DNA from: Octopus sinensis
Lineage: Eukaryota
NCBI RefSeq assembly: GCF_006345805.1
Contig: NC_043024.1
Span: 7,626,001 to 7,690,000 of the forward strand
Length of the DNA stretch: 64,000 bases
Reading direction: 5' to 3'
Positions 2,379-44,899 of this stretch are shown here, piece after piece. The position numbers and the translations under genes were made by a program. The notes beneath the pieces are model-generated. The model saw only the letters and a program-made list of their open reading frames with translations, did not search any database and had not been told where the DNA came from. Within the stretch, counting starts at the first letter, position 1, and each line of letters starts with the position of its first letter.

Positions 2379-2489
2379 GATAAATTGCCAAACTAATCGC
2401 TGTTCCATTCTTCATGCATGCAAAGATACCATAGAGACCAAAATAGACTCCTTCTCCGACAGTTCGACCTTGATATTTACATATTGGCG
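2379..2489 (-). CDS. Coding exon 5 (111 nt, phase 1-1): (A)PICKYQGRTVGEGVYFGLYGIFACMKNGTAISLAIY
   Basis: Acceptor TTTTCTTTTTTTCTAG, donor C|GTAAGT. Open frame; CxY...EG..F resembles the start of the exon 3 module; contains an NGT sequon. Confidence 0.85.
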
Positions 2490-2509
2490 CTAGAAAAAAA
2501 GAAAATGTA

Positions 2510-3300
2510 CATCATCATCATTATCGCTTAACATCCGCTTTTCATGTTAGCATGAGTTGGATGGTTCGACCAGGATCTGGGAAGCCAGGAGGCTGCACCA
2601 GGCTCCAGCCTGATCTGGCAGAGTTTCTACAGCTGGATGCCCTTCCTAACGCCAACCACTCCGTGAGTGTAGTGGGTGCATTTTACGTGCCAGGGGCGGC
2701 TGGCAACGGCCACAATCGGTTGGTGGTTTTTACTTGCCACCAGCACGGAAGCCTGTCAAGGTGGCACTGGCATCGGCCACGTACAGATTTCTCGTTTAAC
2801 ATCCACTTTCCATGCTAGCTTGGGTTGGACGATTTTGACTGAGGGCTGGCGAACCAGATGGCTGCACCAGGCTCCAATCTTGATCTGGCAGAGTTTCTAC
2901 AGCAGGGTGCCCTACCTAACGCCAACCACTCCGTGAGTGTAGTGGGTGCATTTTACGTGCCAGGGGCGGCTGGCAACGGCCACAATCGGTTGGTGGTTTT
3001 TACTTGCCACCAGCACGGAAGCCTGTCAAGGTGGTGCTGGCATCGGCCACGTACAGATTTCTCGTTTAACATCCGCTTTCCATGCTAGCTTGGGTTGGAC
3101 GATTTTGACTGAGGGCTGGCGAACCAGATGGCTGCACCAGGCTCCAATCTTGATCTGGCAGAGTTTCTACAGCTAGATGCCCTTCCTAATGCCAACCACT
3201 CCGAGAGTGTAGTGGGTGCTTTTTACGTGCCACCGGCATGGGGGCCAGTCAGGCAGTACTGGCACCGACCTTGCTCGAATCGTTTTACACGTGCAGTTTC
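2510..3300 (-). mobile_element. (GAT)n-tailed retroposon, family b, with a 270-bp tandem duplication
   Basis: Tail …GGACGTTAAACGATGATGATG and core TGGTTGGCGTTAGGAAGGGCATCCAGCTGTAGAAAC. Other copies at about 5627-6600, 7781-8070, 8440-9050, 20956-21410, 23228-23570, 34237-35250, 37690-37875, 38600-38875, 40730-41260 and 52080-52517. Confidence 0.75.
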
Positions 3301-3338
3301 AGTCAGGTTGGTAACAAAAGGGTTAAATTAATCATTTG

Positions 3339-4007
3339 TTAACCCTTTTGTTACCATATTTCTGTTGTGATGCTCTGTGTTTCTTTCAATTACTTTAAAT
3401 ATAACAAAGAATTTAGTAAAATAACTTAGTTATCATTCAGCTAGTGTTAGGAACATAAATTGTGACTAAGGTTTGATGGAAGATTTTGAAAACAAAACAT
3501 TTGTACTACAGAGCCAAAGGCTGTTTCAGAAGAGTTGGTATGAAAAGGGTTAAATTAATCATTTGTTAACCCTTTTGTTACCATATTTCTGTTGAGATGC
3601 TTGGTGTTTCTTTCAATTAATTTTAAATATAACAAAGAATTTAGTTAAATAACTTAGTTATCATTAAGCTAGTGTCAGGAACATAATTGTGACTAAGGTT
3701 TGATGGAAGATTTTGAAAACAAAACATTTGTACTACAGAGCCAAAGGCTGTTTCAGAAGAGTTGGTATGAAAAGGGTTAAATTAATCATTTGTTAACCCT
3801 TTTGTTACCATATTTCTGTTGAGATGCTTGGTGTTTCTTTCAATTAATTTTAAATATAACAAAGAATTTAGTTAAATAACTTAGTGTCAGGAACATAAAT
3901 TGTGACTAAGGTTTGGTGGAAGATTTTAGTTCAGAAATTATGAAAACAAGACATTTGTACCACAGAGCCAGAGCCGGTTTCAGCCAGGTGGGTAACAAAA
4001 GGGTTAA
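3339..4007. mobile_element. Three tandem TTAA-flanked (piggyBac-like) MITEs, 227-bp period
   Basis: TTAA|CCCTTTTGTTACC…AAAAGGG|TTAA units separated by an identical ATTAATCATTTG spacer; a related copy at about 60023-60643 is split by a SINE. Confidence 0.8.
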
Positions 4008-41328: not shown

Positions 41329-43736
41329 TATATACACACATACATATATACCCACATACATATACACAGGATGAAAGGCAAAGTCGAACTCAGCGGAATT
41401 TATAACCACCACATAATACCCAGATGAGGAGATATACGCGCACATTTATATACATCTACACGTGTCTGTGTAGTTAAAGCCAGTACTGCTGTATTGATTG
41501 ACCAAGGGAGCAGGGAAGCTGTTGTCATCAATGATGACATCCCCAGTACTTGAGTCCACCACCCTAGTTAAAGGGAGTGATGCCACCAGCTAGCTTCCTC
41601 TCAGTGCCTAGTTGCAGTTCTTGCATCTCCTGTCTTGAGATGATGATCTTCATACACATATGCATACACACATATATACACATGTGTGTATATATACACA
41701 AAGGGCGGCGAGCTGGCAGAGACGTTAGGCGAAATGCGTAGCCGTATTTCGTCTGCCATTACATTCTGAGTTCAAATTCCGCCGGGGTCGACTTTGCCTT
41801 TCATCCTTTCGGGGGGTCGATAAATTAAGTACCAGTTTCGCACTGGGGTCGATGTAATCGACTTAATCCCTTTGTCTGTCTTTGTTTGTCCCCCTCTATG
41901 TTTAGCCCCTTGTGGGTAGTAAAGAAATATATATACACATGTATATACATACATGCATGCATAGATACACACACACACACACGTATACACATACATATAT
42001 GTGTGTGTGTGAGAGTATGAAGCATTTTGGAAAAAAAATATTGGATGGATAAAGTAATATATACAAATATATACATATATACAAAATGTCTCAGAAAAAT
42101 GGTGGGATGACCATGGTTGGTAATTTTCTTGATCATTGTTGTGTTGTGACCCCCATCAGTCATGAATGAGCATGGGATTGCACCTAGAAAGTTACCCTCC
42201 GAGGCACAAGTCTGGGCAAGGTTGTTTATGGAAGACCAGCAGTCTCCCATGCATACCAGCATCCCCTTCTCCATGTCACTGATGTTATCCAAGGGAATGG
42301 CAAAGGGGCCGATACAGCTTGGCACCAGTGATGTCGCAGCTCATTTATTAACGTGCAAGTGGCTGAGTATTCTACAGACACGTGTACCCTTAACGTAGTT
42401 CTCGGGGAGATTCAGCGTGACAAGGCTGGCCCTTTGAAATGCAAGTACAACAGAAACAGGAAGAAAGAGTGAGAGAAAGTTTACCACCACACTCTGCCGG
42501 AGCCTTGTGGAGCTTTAGGTGTTTTCGCTAAATAAACAATGCCCGGTCTGGGAATCGAAACCGTGATCCTCTGACCGCGAGTCCGCTGCCCTAACCACTG
42601 GGCCATTGCGCCTCCACATTTCTTGATCATAAGCCTACAGTATTACTTACTGATGAAATTGGGCTAAGCATCAACATAACAACATTATCATAAAAATTAT
42701 TATAATTTTGTATACTAAGCAAAAATTCCTGTTGTTCTCTGCTACAAAGGTTACAAAGGTTTTGGTGTGCCCCAGTCAGTTGGTGATCCTTTGATCCTGT
42801 CAATTGGTGTATAAATTTCTATTGCATAACAGAAATTGTACCTACACACACAAATGATGTGTTGGAGCAGTTGTAGTGTCTATGGAACTGAATACAGTAA
42901 ATATTTCCTGCAGACCAACAGAGGGATAAAATACAGCTTTAAAGCAGACAGGCAGGATTTGAACTTGGTCATTAACCAACAAAAACAATTATTGCTCAGT
43001 ATGTTACCACCTGCTCCAACCTCACAGACCAGACAATACAGTTTCTCATAATAAACTGTATTAACCCATTAGCGCTTATGGTTCTCTTTTTGAGGACCAG
43101 AAAGATAACCTATCATATTTCTGCAACACCTGTATTTTTCTGAGGTATCTTTAAAAAGTTAGTCATCAAGACTGGATTGTCTTTCAAATATTGTAATAAA
43201 TTTACTTTATATGAAGACCCGACAAATGAAGTGAGTTCATGGCTTGCAGGACGGCCTGCTGTGCTAACCTTGGATCATAGAGTGACCCGCTGTTCTTGAA
43301 GAGACCTATTGTGTCAAGTACATCAACACCAACATCAAAATAAAAATCAAATGGAAATTTTAGTTAAGACACCTGTGCCGGCGACAGGTAAAATGCACTG
43401 CCCGAATGTGGCAGATGCCAGCATCGCCTGACTGGCGTCCGTATTGGTGACACGTAAAAAGCACCAACTGATCGTGGCCGTTGCCAGCCTCCTGGTCCCT
43501 TGCTCAAGAACACAACACGCAGCCTGGTCCAGGATTCGAGCTCACAACCTCACAATCGTAAGCTCGACGCTCTAACCACTGAGCTATGAGAGGATTAATA
43601 AAGTTTGTAGATTAGTTATCTTTAACCCTTTAGTATTTAAACCGGCCATATCCGGCCAAAATATTTAATCTGTTTTATGTTCAAACTGAGCAGATCCAGG
43701 CTCTCACACCTACCCTACAATGTTATTCTACATTAA

Positions 43737-44044
43737 CCCCTTACCCGGCAGAAACGAATATATACGTTTTGACCGAAATCGTTTTTTTCTATCTCTGGCG
43801 AGTTAACTCGTCAAAAGATAGACTCGCCAAAATCGACAGCAAACGAGTTCCTTTGTCTAAAAACGGGTTAACTCGTTTCTGCCCAAAGCAGTAATTTAAA
43901 ATCAATATTATTGAATTAAAATTCATAATAAATAAGGTTTGAAATATACCTCGAAATCACCATTCAAAACATAGTAAAATAAAACAATTAAAAAATATGT
44001 CTGAAAAAATACATTTATTTTCAAAATAATTGTTGGGTAAGGGG
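43737..44044. mobile_element. 308-bp piggyBac-like MITE nested in another TTAA MITE (43621-44160)
   Basis: TTAA|CCCCTTACCC…GGGTAAGGGG|TTAA; the host family copy at about 24085-24310 has a single TTAA at this site. Confidence 0.85.
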
Positions 44045-44277
44045 TTAAGTAATTACACCATCAAGATCTTGAAGATATGAGATAATGCATGATTAATTCA
44101 AATCAATGGGAATCAATAAGCATTATGTTTGAAAGAATAATCTGAACACTAAAGGGTTAGTCATATTTATGTAATCTCAAGCAAATGAATTCTATAAATT
44201 AGAAGTCCTTAGTACAACAAATGAACTTATTAATATGGAATTATAAGATAAGAATATAATAAAAACATTTTACTCAC

Positions 44278-44311
44278 CCAGAAGTGTAGAAAGTATAAAC
44301 ACAAAATTCAT
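44278..44311 (-). CDS. Coding exon 1: start of signal peptide (MNFVFILSTLL + G)
   Basis: ATG AAT TTT GTG TTT ATA CTT TCT ACA CTT CTG G|GTGAGT. Hydrophobic stretch followed by a consensus phase-1 donor. A possible upstream acceptor TTTATTTGACAG at 44503 would define a 5' UTR at 44502-44312. Confidence 0.7.
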
Positions 44312-44899
44312 AGTGGAACCGAAATCTTGTTTTGAAAGCAGTTCTGTTCCTGGACACTTGACGCTTTTGAAATGTGACAGTGTCACTATCGGTAATCAGC
44401 TTTAAATAACCGTCCACTAACCGACGTACCGATGCATAGCAATCTACCGGCTAATGCCTTCTTTACTCGATGCCATTTTCTGAGCTCTCCGAAGACAAGC
44501 ATCTGTCAAATAAAAGTCACGAATTTAAAAATAACAGAACCTTACGAAATCGTATGATTTCTAAGGACTCCTTAACAGCCAAATTCAACAAAATTTTGTT
44601 TTGATGTGGGTTTGACAAGGCTACTTGAAAATACTTCCAGATCGGCAGCAAGAGGCTTTGCTTGCTTTTTCTTTGATATTTTTCTTGGTTTTTTTGTTAT
44701 TTTACACAGGGGGTTATTATTTGTTCATTTTGTTTTTCTTTTTTGGCTGGTTTTGTTGTTGGGTTTTTGTAAAAAGCTAAAATGCCTTTTTTTTAAAAGT
44801 TTAAGCGTTGTTTTGACTTAGTGTCGAGTGCAGGTTGTAAAATTAATATTATATTGAAGAAATATTTGATGGTCCATTTTCGGAGCAGAAAAGTTAGAG

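Follow-up and report, generated by a model that had tools for sequence, protein, structure and literature searches.

LOC115225789 of Octopus sinensis, a fast-evolving octopod gene for a probably secreted protein of small cysteine-rich modules

The stretch of DNA considered here, referred to as the window, comprises 64,000 nucleotides of Octopus sinensis (NCBI RefSeq assembly GCF_006345805.1, contig NC_043024.1; C28:7626001-7690000). On its minus strand it carries the 5' part of LOC115225789, a gene which is already annotated in RefSeq and in the assembly of O. vulgaris, and which is uncharacterised, unnamed and unstudied. Five short coding exons (Table 1) are separated by introns dense with tandem and dispersed repeats. 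Polypyrimidine-(C/T)AG acceptors precede exons 2-5, GT(A/G)A donors end all five, and every junction between them is in phase 1. Splicing of the five exons gives a stop-free product of 165 amino acids (aa) with 14 cysteine (Cys) residues in total. These exons, with their coordinates, strand, phase-1 introns and four junctions, had been proposed earlier from the letters of the window alone (the sequence-only reading), and are borne out by the splice sites and by RefSeq. The spliced product, the same as that of the sequence-only reading, agrees in every letter with the first 165 residues of each of the six isoforms (391-437 aa) that RefSeq has for LOC115225789, and a comparison of the window-derived product with XP_029652607.2 and XP_036370470.1 found identity over these residues; the four predicted junctions thus agree with an independent gene model. 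Where the sequence-only reading had counted 13 further Cys after C22, there are 12. Its description of the exons as invisible to an open reading frame (ORF) list is accurate, since start-to-stop in-frame ORFs around them reach only 29-52 aa and were therefore missed by a list with a floor of 60 aa. The gene itself was not hidden, being represented by the six RefSeq isoforms and by the O. vulgaris protein CAI9741643.1.

The remainder of the gene was mapped by placing XP_029652607.2 on the genomic DNA. LOC115225789 has 12 coding exons with a coding span of approximately 103 kb for a coding sequence of 1.3 kb (an open frame of 437 codons), and extends approximately 59 kb beyond the left edge of the window, which carries 5 of the 12 coding exons and 165 of the 437 codons (38%). 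The extent of 42 kb given by the sequence-only reading thus covers the 5' part only; left of base 1, where it had proposed to look for 3' exons, lie seven more. An ab initio exon scan of this region recovered exons 9-11, and not 6-8 or 12, which were placed with the RefSeq protein. All 11 introns are in phase 1 with AG/GT boundaries. The encoded protein consists of a signal peptide, a two-Cys segment, a VWC-like domain (exons 3-4), another two-Cys segment, a micro-exon, the segment of exon 7, and five 4-Cys exons (8-12). Given only the 165-aa fragment, a word-indexed search for homologues came back empty; with three downstream exons added from the DNA left of the window, the same search returned isoform X2 of LOC115225789 and CAI9741643.1, for which UniRef gives the automatic name 'Kielin/chordin-like protein'. 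The window also contains the start of a head-to-head neighbour, the orthologue of O. vulgaris CAI9741642.1 ('kielin chordin'), which is transcribed divergently with its start codon about 10 kb from that of LOC115225789.

Table 1. Coding exons of LOC115225789 and of its divergent neighbour; positions are relative to the window unless marked C28, and negative values lie left of its first base
Feature	Position	Strand	Remarks
Coding exon 1	44278..44311	-	34 nt; start codon ATG, bulk of the signal peptide (MNFVFILSTLL) and 1 nt more; phase-1 donor GTGAGT
Coding exon 2	22337..22456	-	120 nt; end of signal peptide (likely cleavage between AGG and C), then C22, C42
Coding exon 3	13735..13854	-	120 nt; six-Cys VWC-SD1/ancestral-pacifastin-like module C-x17-C-x2-C-x-C-x7-C-x3-C
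Coding exon 4	5496..5606	-	111 nt; three Cys, C-x5-C-x8-C
Coding exon 5	2379..2489	-	111 nt; two Cys and N156-G-T sequon; phase-1 GTAAGT donor at end
Start of intron 5	1..2378	-	gene exits the window here
Exon 6	-2289..-2315	-	27-nt micro-exon (9 residues); XP_029652607.2 map
Exon 7	-21085..-21228	-	irregular three-Cys segment; XP_029652607.2 map
Exon 8	-24764..-24904	-	4-Cys module; XP_029652607.2 map
Exon 9	-28138..-28260	-	4-Cys module; XP_029652607.2 map
Exon 10	-41412..-41534	-	4-Cys module; XP_029652607.2 map
Exon 11	-42575..-42703	-	4-Cys module; XP_029652607.2 map
Exon 12	-58837..-58969	-	terminal, with stop; XP_029652607.2 map
Frameshifted exon 12	C28 about 7,567,030-7,567,165	-	compared with the intact 4-Cys module of O. 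vulgaris, ...ECDGK and stop
First two exons of CAI9741642.1 orthologue	55945-56034, 59253-59312	+	from comparison with O. vulgaris

The full product of LOC115225789 is an acidic protein of approximately 46 kDa, with seven N-x-S/T sequons and 36-38 Cys past the predicted signal peptide. Read heuristically, its N-terminus has the h-region FVFILSTLLVI (Kyte-Doolittle 2.99) and the residues A-G-G before C22. The most hydrophobic 19-mers (at most 1.79) all fall within this segment, with none elsewhere and no membrane anchor, in line with the signal-peptide-like segment of the sequence-only reading. The NGT sequon which that reading had pointed out is present, and its N156 is invariant in all four species compared (O. 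sinensis, O. vulgaris, O. bimaculoides and Argonauta hians). The product is probably secreted and N-glycosylated, judging by these features of its sequence, and would fold as a string of small disulfide-stapled beta modules.

The exon-3 module bears the pattern C-x17-C-K-V-C-Y-C-x7-C-V-K-I-C, of which the CKVCYC stretch is invariant in the four species. The sequence-only reading had called it VWC/pacifastin-like and proposed a HMMER check of both families. That check gave no match at E<=10, either to Pacifastin_I (PF05375) or to VWC (PF00093), the latter with the whole protein, with exons 3-4 alone and with the orthologues; a sequence search of the PDB also found nothing. The likeness itself is upheld by profile and fold. 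The stretch from exon 3 to the middle of exon 4 (residues 53-110) matches, in phmmer, multi-module proteins which score against Pacifastin_I with E values of 4e-25 to 9e-107, with VWC overlapping. An hhalign comparison of the four-species exon-3 profile with 15 modules positive for both VWC and Pacifastin_I gave a probability of 97.2% (E value 3.4e-11). An AlphaFold2 (AF2) model of the module has a predicted local distance difference test (pLDDT) value of 94.0 and five short strands. With Foldseek, this model superimposes on the VWC domains of CCN3 (5nb8; template modelling (TM) score 0.82, root-mean-square deviation (rmsd) 1.0 A), collagen IIA (5nir; TM 0.80) and NEL (9oz8; TM 0.80, 40% identity), the rmsd to VWC domains being 1.0-1.3 A overall. 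The TM scores to the solved pacifastins 7sao, 7snd, 1gl1 and 2f91 are 0.47-0.58, against a published threshold of at least 0.5 combined with a six-Cys scaffold (PMC13388995), and this scaffold is restricted to exon 3. In its modelled fold, the exon-3 module is nearer to VWC domains than to pacifastin inhibitors.

The published pacifastin signature is Cys1-x(9-12)-Cys2-Asn-x-Cys3-x-Cys4-x(2-3)-Gly-x(3-6)-Cys5-Thr-x3-Cys6 (PMC2689174). In all four species the exon-3 module departs from it at three points: the Cys1-Cys2 spacing is 16-17, Lys or Thr replaces Asn after Cys2, and the Cys5-Cys6 loop has three residues without Thr at the required place (CVKIC, CVTMC, CHTLC), one short of C-T-x3-C. Pacifastin-like domains do share with it the six-Cys scaffold with a central C-x2-C-x-C, besides the profile-level homology to Pacifastin_I-positive modules, and the long Cys1-Cys2 segment of exon 3 fits the beta hairpin that extends the N-terminus of the 'ancestral' molluscan pacifastin-like lineage (PMC13388995). 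The organisation of pacifastin genes, with one domain per exon, exon duplication, alternative splicing and fast evolution (PMC2689174), is matched by LOC115225789; a difference is the Cys2-Cys6 pair, which its 4-Cys modules lack.

The VWC domains of CCN3, collagen IIA and NEL/NELL have in common with exon 3 the motif C-x3-(G/N)-x2-Y-x2-G-x2-F ... C-x2-C-x-C and the predicted five-strand beta mini-fold, and the VWC-only kielin/chordin-like proteins of molluscs are likewise secreted, modular and rich in Cys. Exon 4 of O. sinensis lacks C-C-x2-C, the motif that marks the second VWC subdomain, and exons 3-4 together hold nine Cys, not ten. In exon 4 of O. bimaculoides two Cys are adjacent, yet CCxxC is missing there too. 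The boundaries of exon 4 are the same in O. bimaculoides and Argonauta, with one Cys shifted in O. bimaculoides, and the exon is possibly a degenerate second half of a VWC-like domain. Most of the product differs from VWC proteins in consisting of a 4-Cys derivative that has not been described for them. The single-VWC (SVWC) proteins of arthropods are also small, secreted and lineage-specific, with VWC-type cysteine modules. They have a single 8-Cys domain, in contrast with the one six-Cys and five 4-Cys modules of LOC115225789, and no arthropod SVWC sequence was matched in any homologue search with this gene.

Exons 8-12 encode one 4-Cys module each, of the form C-x3-G-x2-[YF]-P-x-G-P-I-P-x-T-x-C-x-C-x7-C and with the consensus xxCxYxGxxxPVGPIPxTxCxCxxxGxVxC. 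Compared by hhalign with the Pfam-positive set, it scores 90.7%, with a gap precisely at Cys2 and without Cys6. On this alignment, the 4-Cys module would correspond to a VWC/pacifastin-type fold minus the disulfide that joins Cys2 and Cys6 under the pacifastin scheme; its own bridges are predicted to be C1-C4 and C3-C5. A genome search found the 4-Cys module nowhere else in O. sinensis, while the six-Cys module type is hugely expanded (C4, C10, C1, C14 and C28:2.7 Mb). Each module being a symmetric phase 1-1 exon, its duplication, loss or skipping leaves the frame intact. Copies of the exon 9/10/11 type number three in O. sinensis and five in O. vulgaris (three of the exon-9/10 type and two of the exon-11 type, one of the five being degenerate), and Argonauta has at least seven module exons. 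In RefSeq, exon 9 or exon 10 is left out of isoforms X4 and X5, and X2, X3 and X6 shorten one of them by 3-15 nt at sites before AT rather than GT; these non-canonical donors may be alignment artefacts from two similar exons (83.7% identical). The symmetric module exons vary in number between species and serve as splicing cassettes. The intron that separates the duplicated exons 9 and 10 is filled by an approximately 12-kb minisatellite with units of about 68-75 nt (-29,500..-41,300 relative to the window).

An exhaustive phmmer search of 1.84 billion representative proteins gave six matches with three orthologues, all from octopods: O. vulgaris (89% identity), O. bimaculoides (XP_014789582.1, partial; 56%) and Argonauta hians (GAB1608938.1, partial; 28%). 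No further species came from a search with a profile of the N-terminal part. By these searches the family is confined to octopods, as the sequence-only reading had supposed in naming an octopod origin and a lineage-specific gene. O. vulgaris has the full set of 12 exons, and its splice sites do not differ; exon 1 is 100% identical and exon 2 has an in-frame 3-nt indel. Exons 2-5 of O. bimaculoides have the same sizes and phases, including the 120-nt phase 1-1 exon 2. Argonauta has exons 2 (120 nt) and 3-5, the 27-nt micro-exon and the tandem module exons, all in phase 1, together with a signal-peptide exon of 37 nt analogous to the 34-nt exon 1; there the gene fits into approximately 15 kb, compared with more than 100 kb in O. 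sinensis. Frame-breaking changes in orthologous exons, which the sequence-only reading had suggested looking for, are absent from exons 1-11. In exon 12 of the O. sinensis assembly, a run of G (at about -58,885 relative to the window) is one base shorter than in O. vulgaris, which shifts the frame of the last 26 or so codons. The C-terminus of O. vulgaris is a complete module (...HLECDGK) followed by a stop, and the RefSeq C-terminus YVPVKRMVIWSVTVSDCFSLHLITS may be an artefact.

The annotated models of the orthologues depart from the DNA in several places. In O. vulgaris, CAI9741643.1 (OX597840.1:6925032-7017189) is mis-built: it reads past the donor of micro-exon 6 (RKFDFIIHRLYNFGHLNALRT) and past that of an exon-10 copy (GILVFIILCFDTSSS...), and omits exons 11-12, all 12 exons being intact in the DNA. 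A GTAAGT after exon 12 of O. vulgaris was considered as a further donor and rejected, as it overlaps the in-frame TGA and no more module exons occur to -120 kb. In Argonauta hians (BAAFZT010000075.1:201422-226593), the orthologue is apparently annotated as two genes (10001-15172 and 17016-25172+ of the local stretch), with module exons continuing at 16917, 18310, 19376, 22080 and 23333. Annotation begins at an ATG inside exon 3, upstream of which are the signal-peptide exon (8069-8105) and exon 2 (9359-9478).

Between O. sinensis and O. vulgaris, the exons are 96.7% identical and the 150-nt intron flanks 98.8%, with an intron divergence of 1.62% over 6.25 kb. Nei-Gojobori counts against O. vulgaris give 17 non-synonymous and 0 synonymous changes in exons 1-8 (N=634, S=170; Fisher p=0.017), and 27.5 and 0.5, respectively, when exons 9 and 11 are included (p=0.0012). 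At 2.7-3.4%, the rate of non-synonymous change (dN) is higher than the divergence of the introns (p=0.04 and 0.0009), while synonymous changes are below the expectation from the intron rate (p=0.03). In exons 2-5 compared with O. bimaculoides, dN is 0.30 and the synonymous rate (dS) 0.26, a ratio of 1.17. Over the same exons 13 of 14 Cys are in place and all 153 codons align without a single indel, as against 113 gap events in 1.6 kb of intron flanks; the introns are approximately 30% diverged and rich in indels where frame and splice sites are kept. Both exon indels relative to O. vulgaris, of 3 and 9 nt, are multiples of 3. When neutrality was simulated with random substitutions equal in number to the differences between O. 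sinensis and O. bimaculoides, the probability of no stop was 0.006 and that of keeping at least 12 Cys was 0.003. Because the exon structure is conserved in three other octopods and in view of this simulation, these are not chance exons. On the sequences compared, the rate at which the protein evolves equals or exceeds the neutral one, yet its frame, its splice sites and its Cys/Gly scaffold are kept. The picture is of loops that change fast on a constrained scaffold; it agrees with diversifying selection, and at the least shows very weak constraint on the residues outside the scaffold.

Taken as a whole, these results make it very probable that LOC115225789 is a genuine spliced gene of 12 exons and about 103 kb, belonging to an octopod family whose frame and scaffold are kept in spite of a neutral or higher rate. 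The same rate could be read in the opposite way, as that of a decaying or non-functional locus, either a pseudogene or a spurious model on which no selection acts: dN/dS is approximately 1.2 relative to O. bimaculoides, exon 12 is frameshifted, no Pfam domain is found, the look-ups for a transcript returned none and the O. vulgaris model contains read-through errors. We consider a dead locus next to inconceivable. Its frame, canonical splice sites and phase-1 junctions would hardly be kept (probabilities of 0.006 for the absence of stops and 0.003 for the Cys), the indels are all multiples of 3, and the architecture is retained as far as Argonauta. Moreover, synonymous changes below and replacements above the expectation from introns are the opposite of what drift produces. 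RefSeq also models six isoforms, and isoform models of the Gnomon pipeline normally require transcript alignments.

As to function, the product of LOC115225789 may tentatively be regarded as a constituent of a secretion with a binding or matrix role outside the cell, of the VWC-only 'kielin/chordin-like' class, which abounds in the secreted matrices of molluscs; we favour this assignment at somewhat less than even chances. Disulfide-stapled beta-hairpin modules would here present variable loops under diversifying selection. The proposal is made because of an analogy with two groups of proteins: the VWC-only kielin/chordin-like proteins, which are the most abundant class in the eggcase matrix of Argonauta (10.1101/2021.07.10.451900), and the 'ancestral' pacifastin-like domains of molluscs, which have been described as matrix-associated (PMC13388995). 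The sequence-only reading had suggested a protease inhibitor, and a precursor of a canonical serine-protease inhibitor of pacifastin type, produced by, for example, the posterior salivary gland and in which every module would block a protease by a reactive-site loop between its last two Cys, would agree with a number of observations. The exon-3 module is homologous to modules that match Pacifastin_I strongly, and of the three such domains in the neighbour CAI9741642.1 one has the loop C-T-K-M-L-C, K-M being a P1-P1' pair reported as dominant in molluscs (PMC13388995). Pacifastins occur in the proteome of the octopus posterior salivary gland (PMC7693380), and what is typical of pacifastin genes (PMC2689174), namely duplicated exons, alternative splicing and rapid adaptive evolution, is seen in LOC115225789 too. 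An inhibitor is nonetheless unlikely: PF05375 is not matched, the pacifastin pattern fails at its three points in every species, and the fold has TM scores of 0.80-0.82 to VWC as against 0.47-0.58 to pacifastins. The modules of exons 8-12 are without Cys2 and Cys6, and therefore have no disulfide-anchored canonical loop. The suggestion of an inhibitor is thus not supported by the motif tests and stays a guess.

The name given by UniRef and the fit of the exon-3 fold to the VWC domains of CCN3, collagen IIA and NEL could also indicate a modulator of the kielin/chordin, crossveinless-2 or CCN type, in which VWC-like modules would bind and sequester BMP/TGF-beta ligands. In the complex of crossveinless-2 with BMP-2, the N-terminal VWC subdomain is the part that binds BMP. 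However, such modulators are conserved across Bilateria, while LOC115225789 is restricted to octopods and evolves very fast (dN/dS of at least 1 and 56% identity within the genus Octopus). The missing Pfam VWC match, the lack of CCxxC in exon 4, the preponderance of 4-Cys modules and the automatic origin of the name also tell against a ligand-binding modulator, which we find highly improbable. More speculatively, and with small likelihood in our estimate, the octopod-only family with its disulfide-reduced 'YPxGPIP' 4-Cys mini-module might have loops that diversify for species-specific recognition at an external interface. If so, such recognition, in egg coat or gamete interaction or in chemical signalling, could add to the isolation of the cryptic sister species O. 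vulgaris and O. sinensis.

Several points weigh against the reading of LOC115225789 as a genuine, fast-evolving gene for a secreted VWC-like matrix or binding protein. The case for a matrix role is one of analogy. A literature search on the locus name, accessions and peptides returned no paper, and look-ups of the exact product for an identical transcript-derived product have none on record. With E<=10, no Pfam domain came up in single modules, in the orthologues or in the products of 165 aa, 290 aa and full length. The Foldseek E values are all above 0.1, a weakness that arises because the domain is tiny (39 residues), and 15 of the 19 rows in the alignment behind the model with pLDDT 94 are Pfam-positive modules; an AF2 model of the full-length protein was discarded at pLDDT 37.6. 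The excess of dN over intron divergence is modest in single-copy exons (p=0.04), the counts in the multi-copy exons 9-11 could be inflated by uncertain orthology and gene conversion, and a dN/dS near 1 relative to O. bimaculoides is also expected from very relaxed constraint on the loops. Finally, the frameshift in exon 12 may be an assembly error or a real, truncated allele.

The locus itself is no discovery, and it makes no long-standing question newly testable. What is new is modest: an octopod-only family, a derived 4-Cys module absent from domain libraries, exon copies that vary in number, and a surplus of replacements between sister species. LOC115225789 is among the fast-evolving secreted genes that separate O. 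sinensis from O. vulgaris, and work on the secretions of cephalopods, or on how the O. vulgaris species complex diverged, could reasonably take it as a candidate. Reading the raw sequence gave the junctions, the frame and the flavour of the domain correctly across repeat-filled introns of 9-22 kb, in agreement with RefSeq.

The divergent neighbour, CAI9741642.1, shares the six-Cys module with LOC115225789 (phmmer E value 8e-4) and differs from it in having three Pfam-positive modules (Pacifastin_I 4e-25, VWC 5e-13), canonical C-T-x3-C loops and no 4-Cys modules. The three module exons of its O. sinensis orthologue were not found on C28 to 30 kb right of the window. One of them maps at 94% to the unplaced contig C9319:42779-42922, and their absence suggests an assembly gap or misplacement in O. 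sinensis. On the opposite side, Cys-containing exons at -104,021..-104,129 and -109,615..-109,723 encode a PSI-like Cys motif, a transmembrane segment and a poly-Cys/basic stretch (NFEALLISMGVIAGL...CCCCRKSKRL). They were considered as part of LOC115225789 and rejected, since with their PSI domain and transmembrane segment they resemble PTTG1IP, and presumably belong to the next gene downstream on the same strand, which bounds the locus.

Intron 1 contains, at 40318-40481 on the minus strand and hence on that of the gene, a full-length match to U2 spliceosomal small nuclear RNA (Rfam RF00004, 139 bits, model positions 1-192), which could be a gene or a pseudogene copy. Microsatellites of the (AC)n/(CATA)n type with extreme GC/AT skew occupy 5.8 kb of intron 2 (13894-19704) and 2.7 kb of intron 1 (30309-33008). 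In intron 5, a borderline transfer RNA (tRNA) match at 1008-1079 (minus strand, 29.7 bits) lies at one edge of a tandem repeat with 3.2 copies of a 237-bp unit (1008-1784), and this unit has a tRNA-like beginning; the repeat is probably an array of a tRNA-derived short interspersed nuclear element. Among the proteins with pacifastin/VWC modules is MDK0675397.1, labelled as Clostridium perfringens, which is encoded on an 866-bp contig and has modules of animal type (Pacifastin_I E value 1.5e-32). It almost certainly represents eukaryotic contamination of a bacterial assembly.

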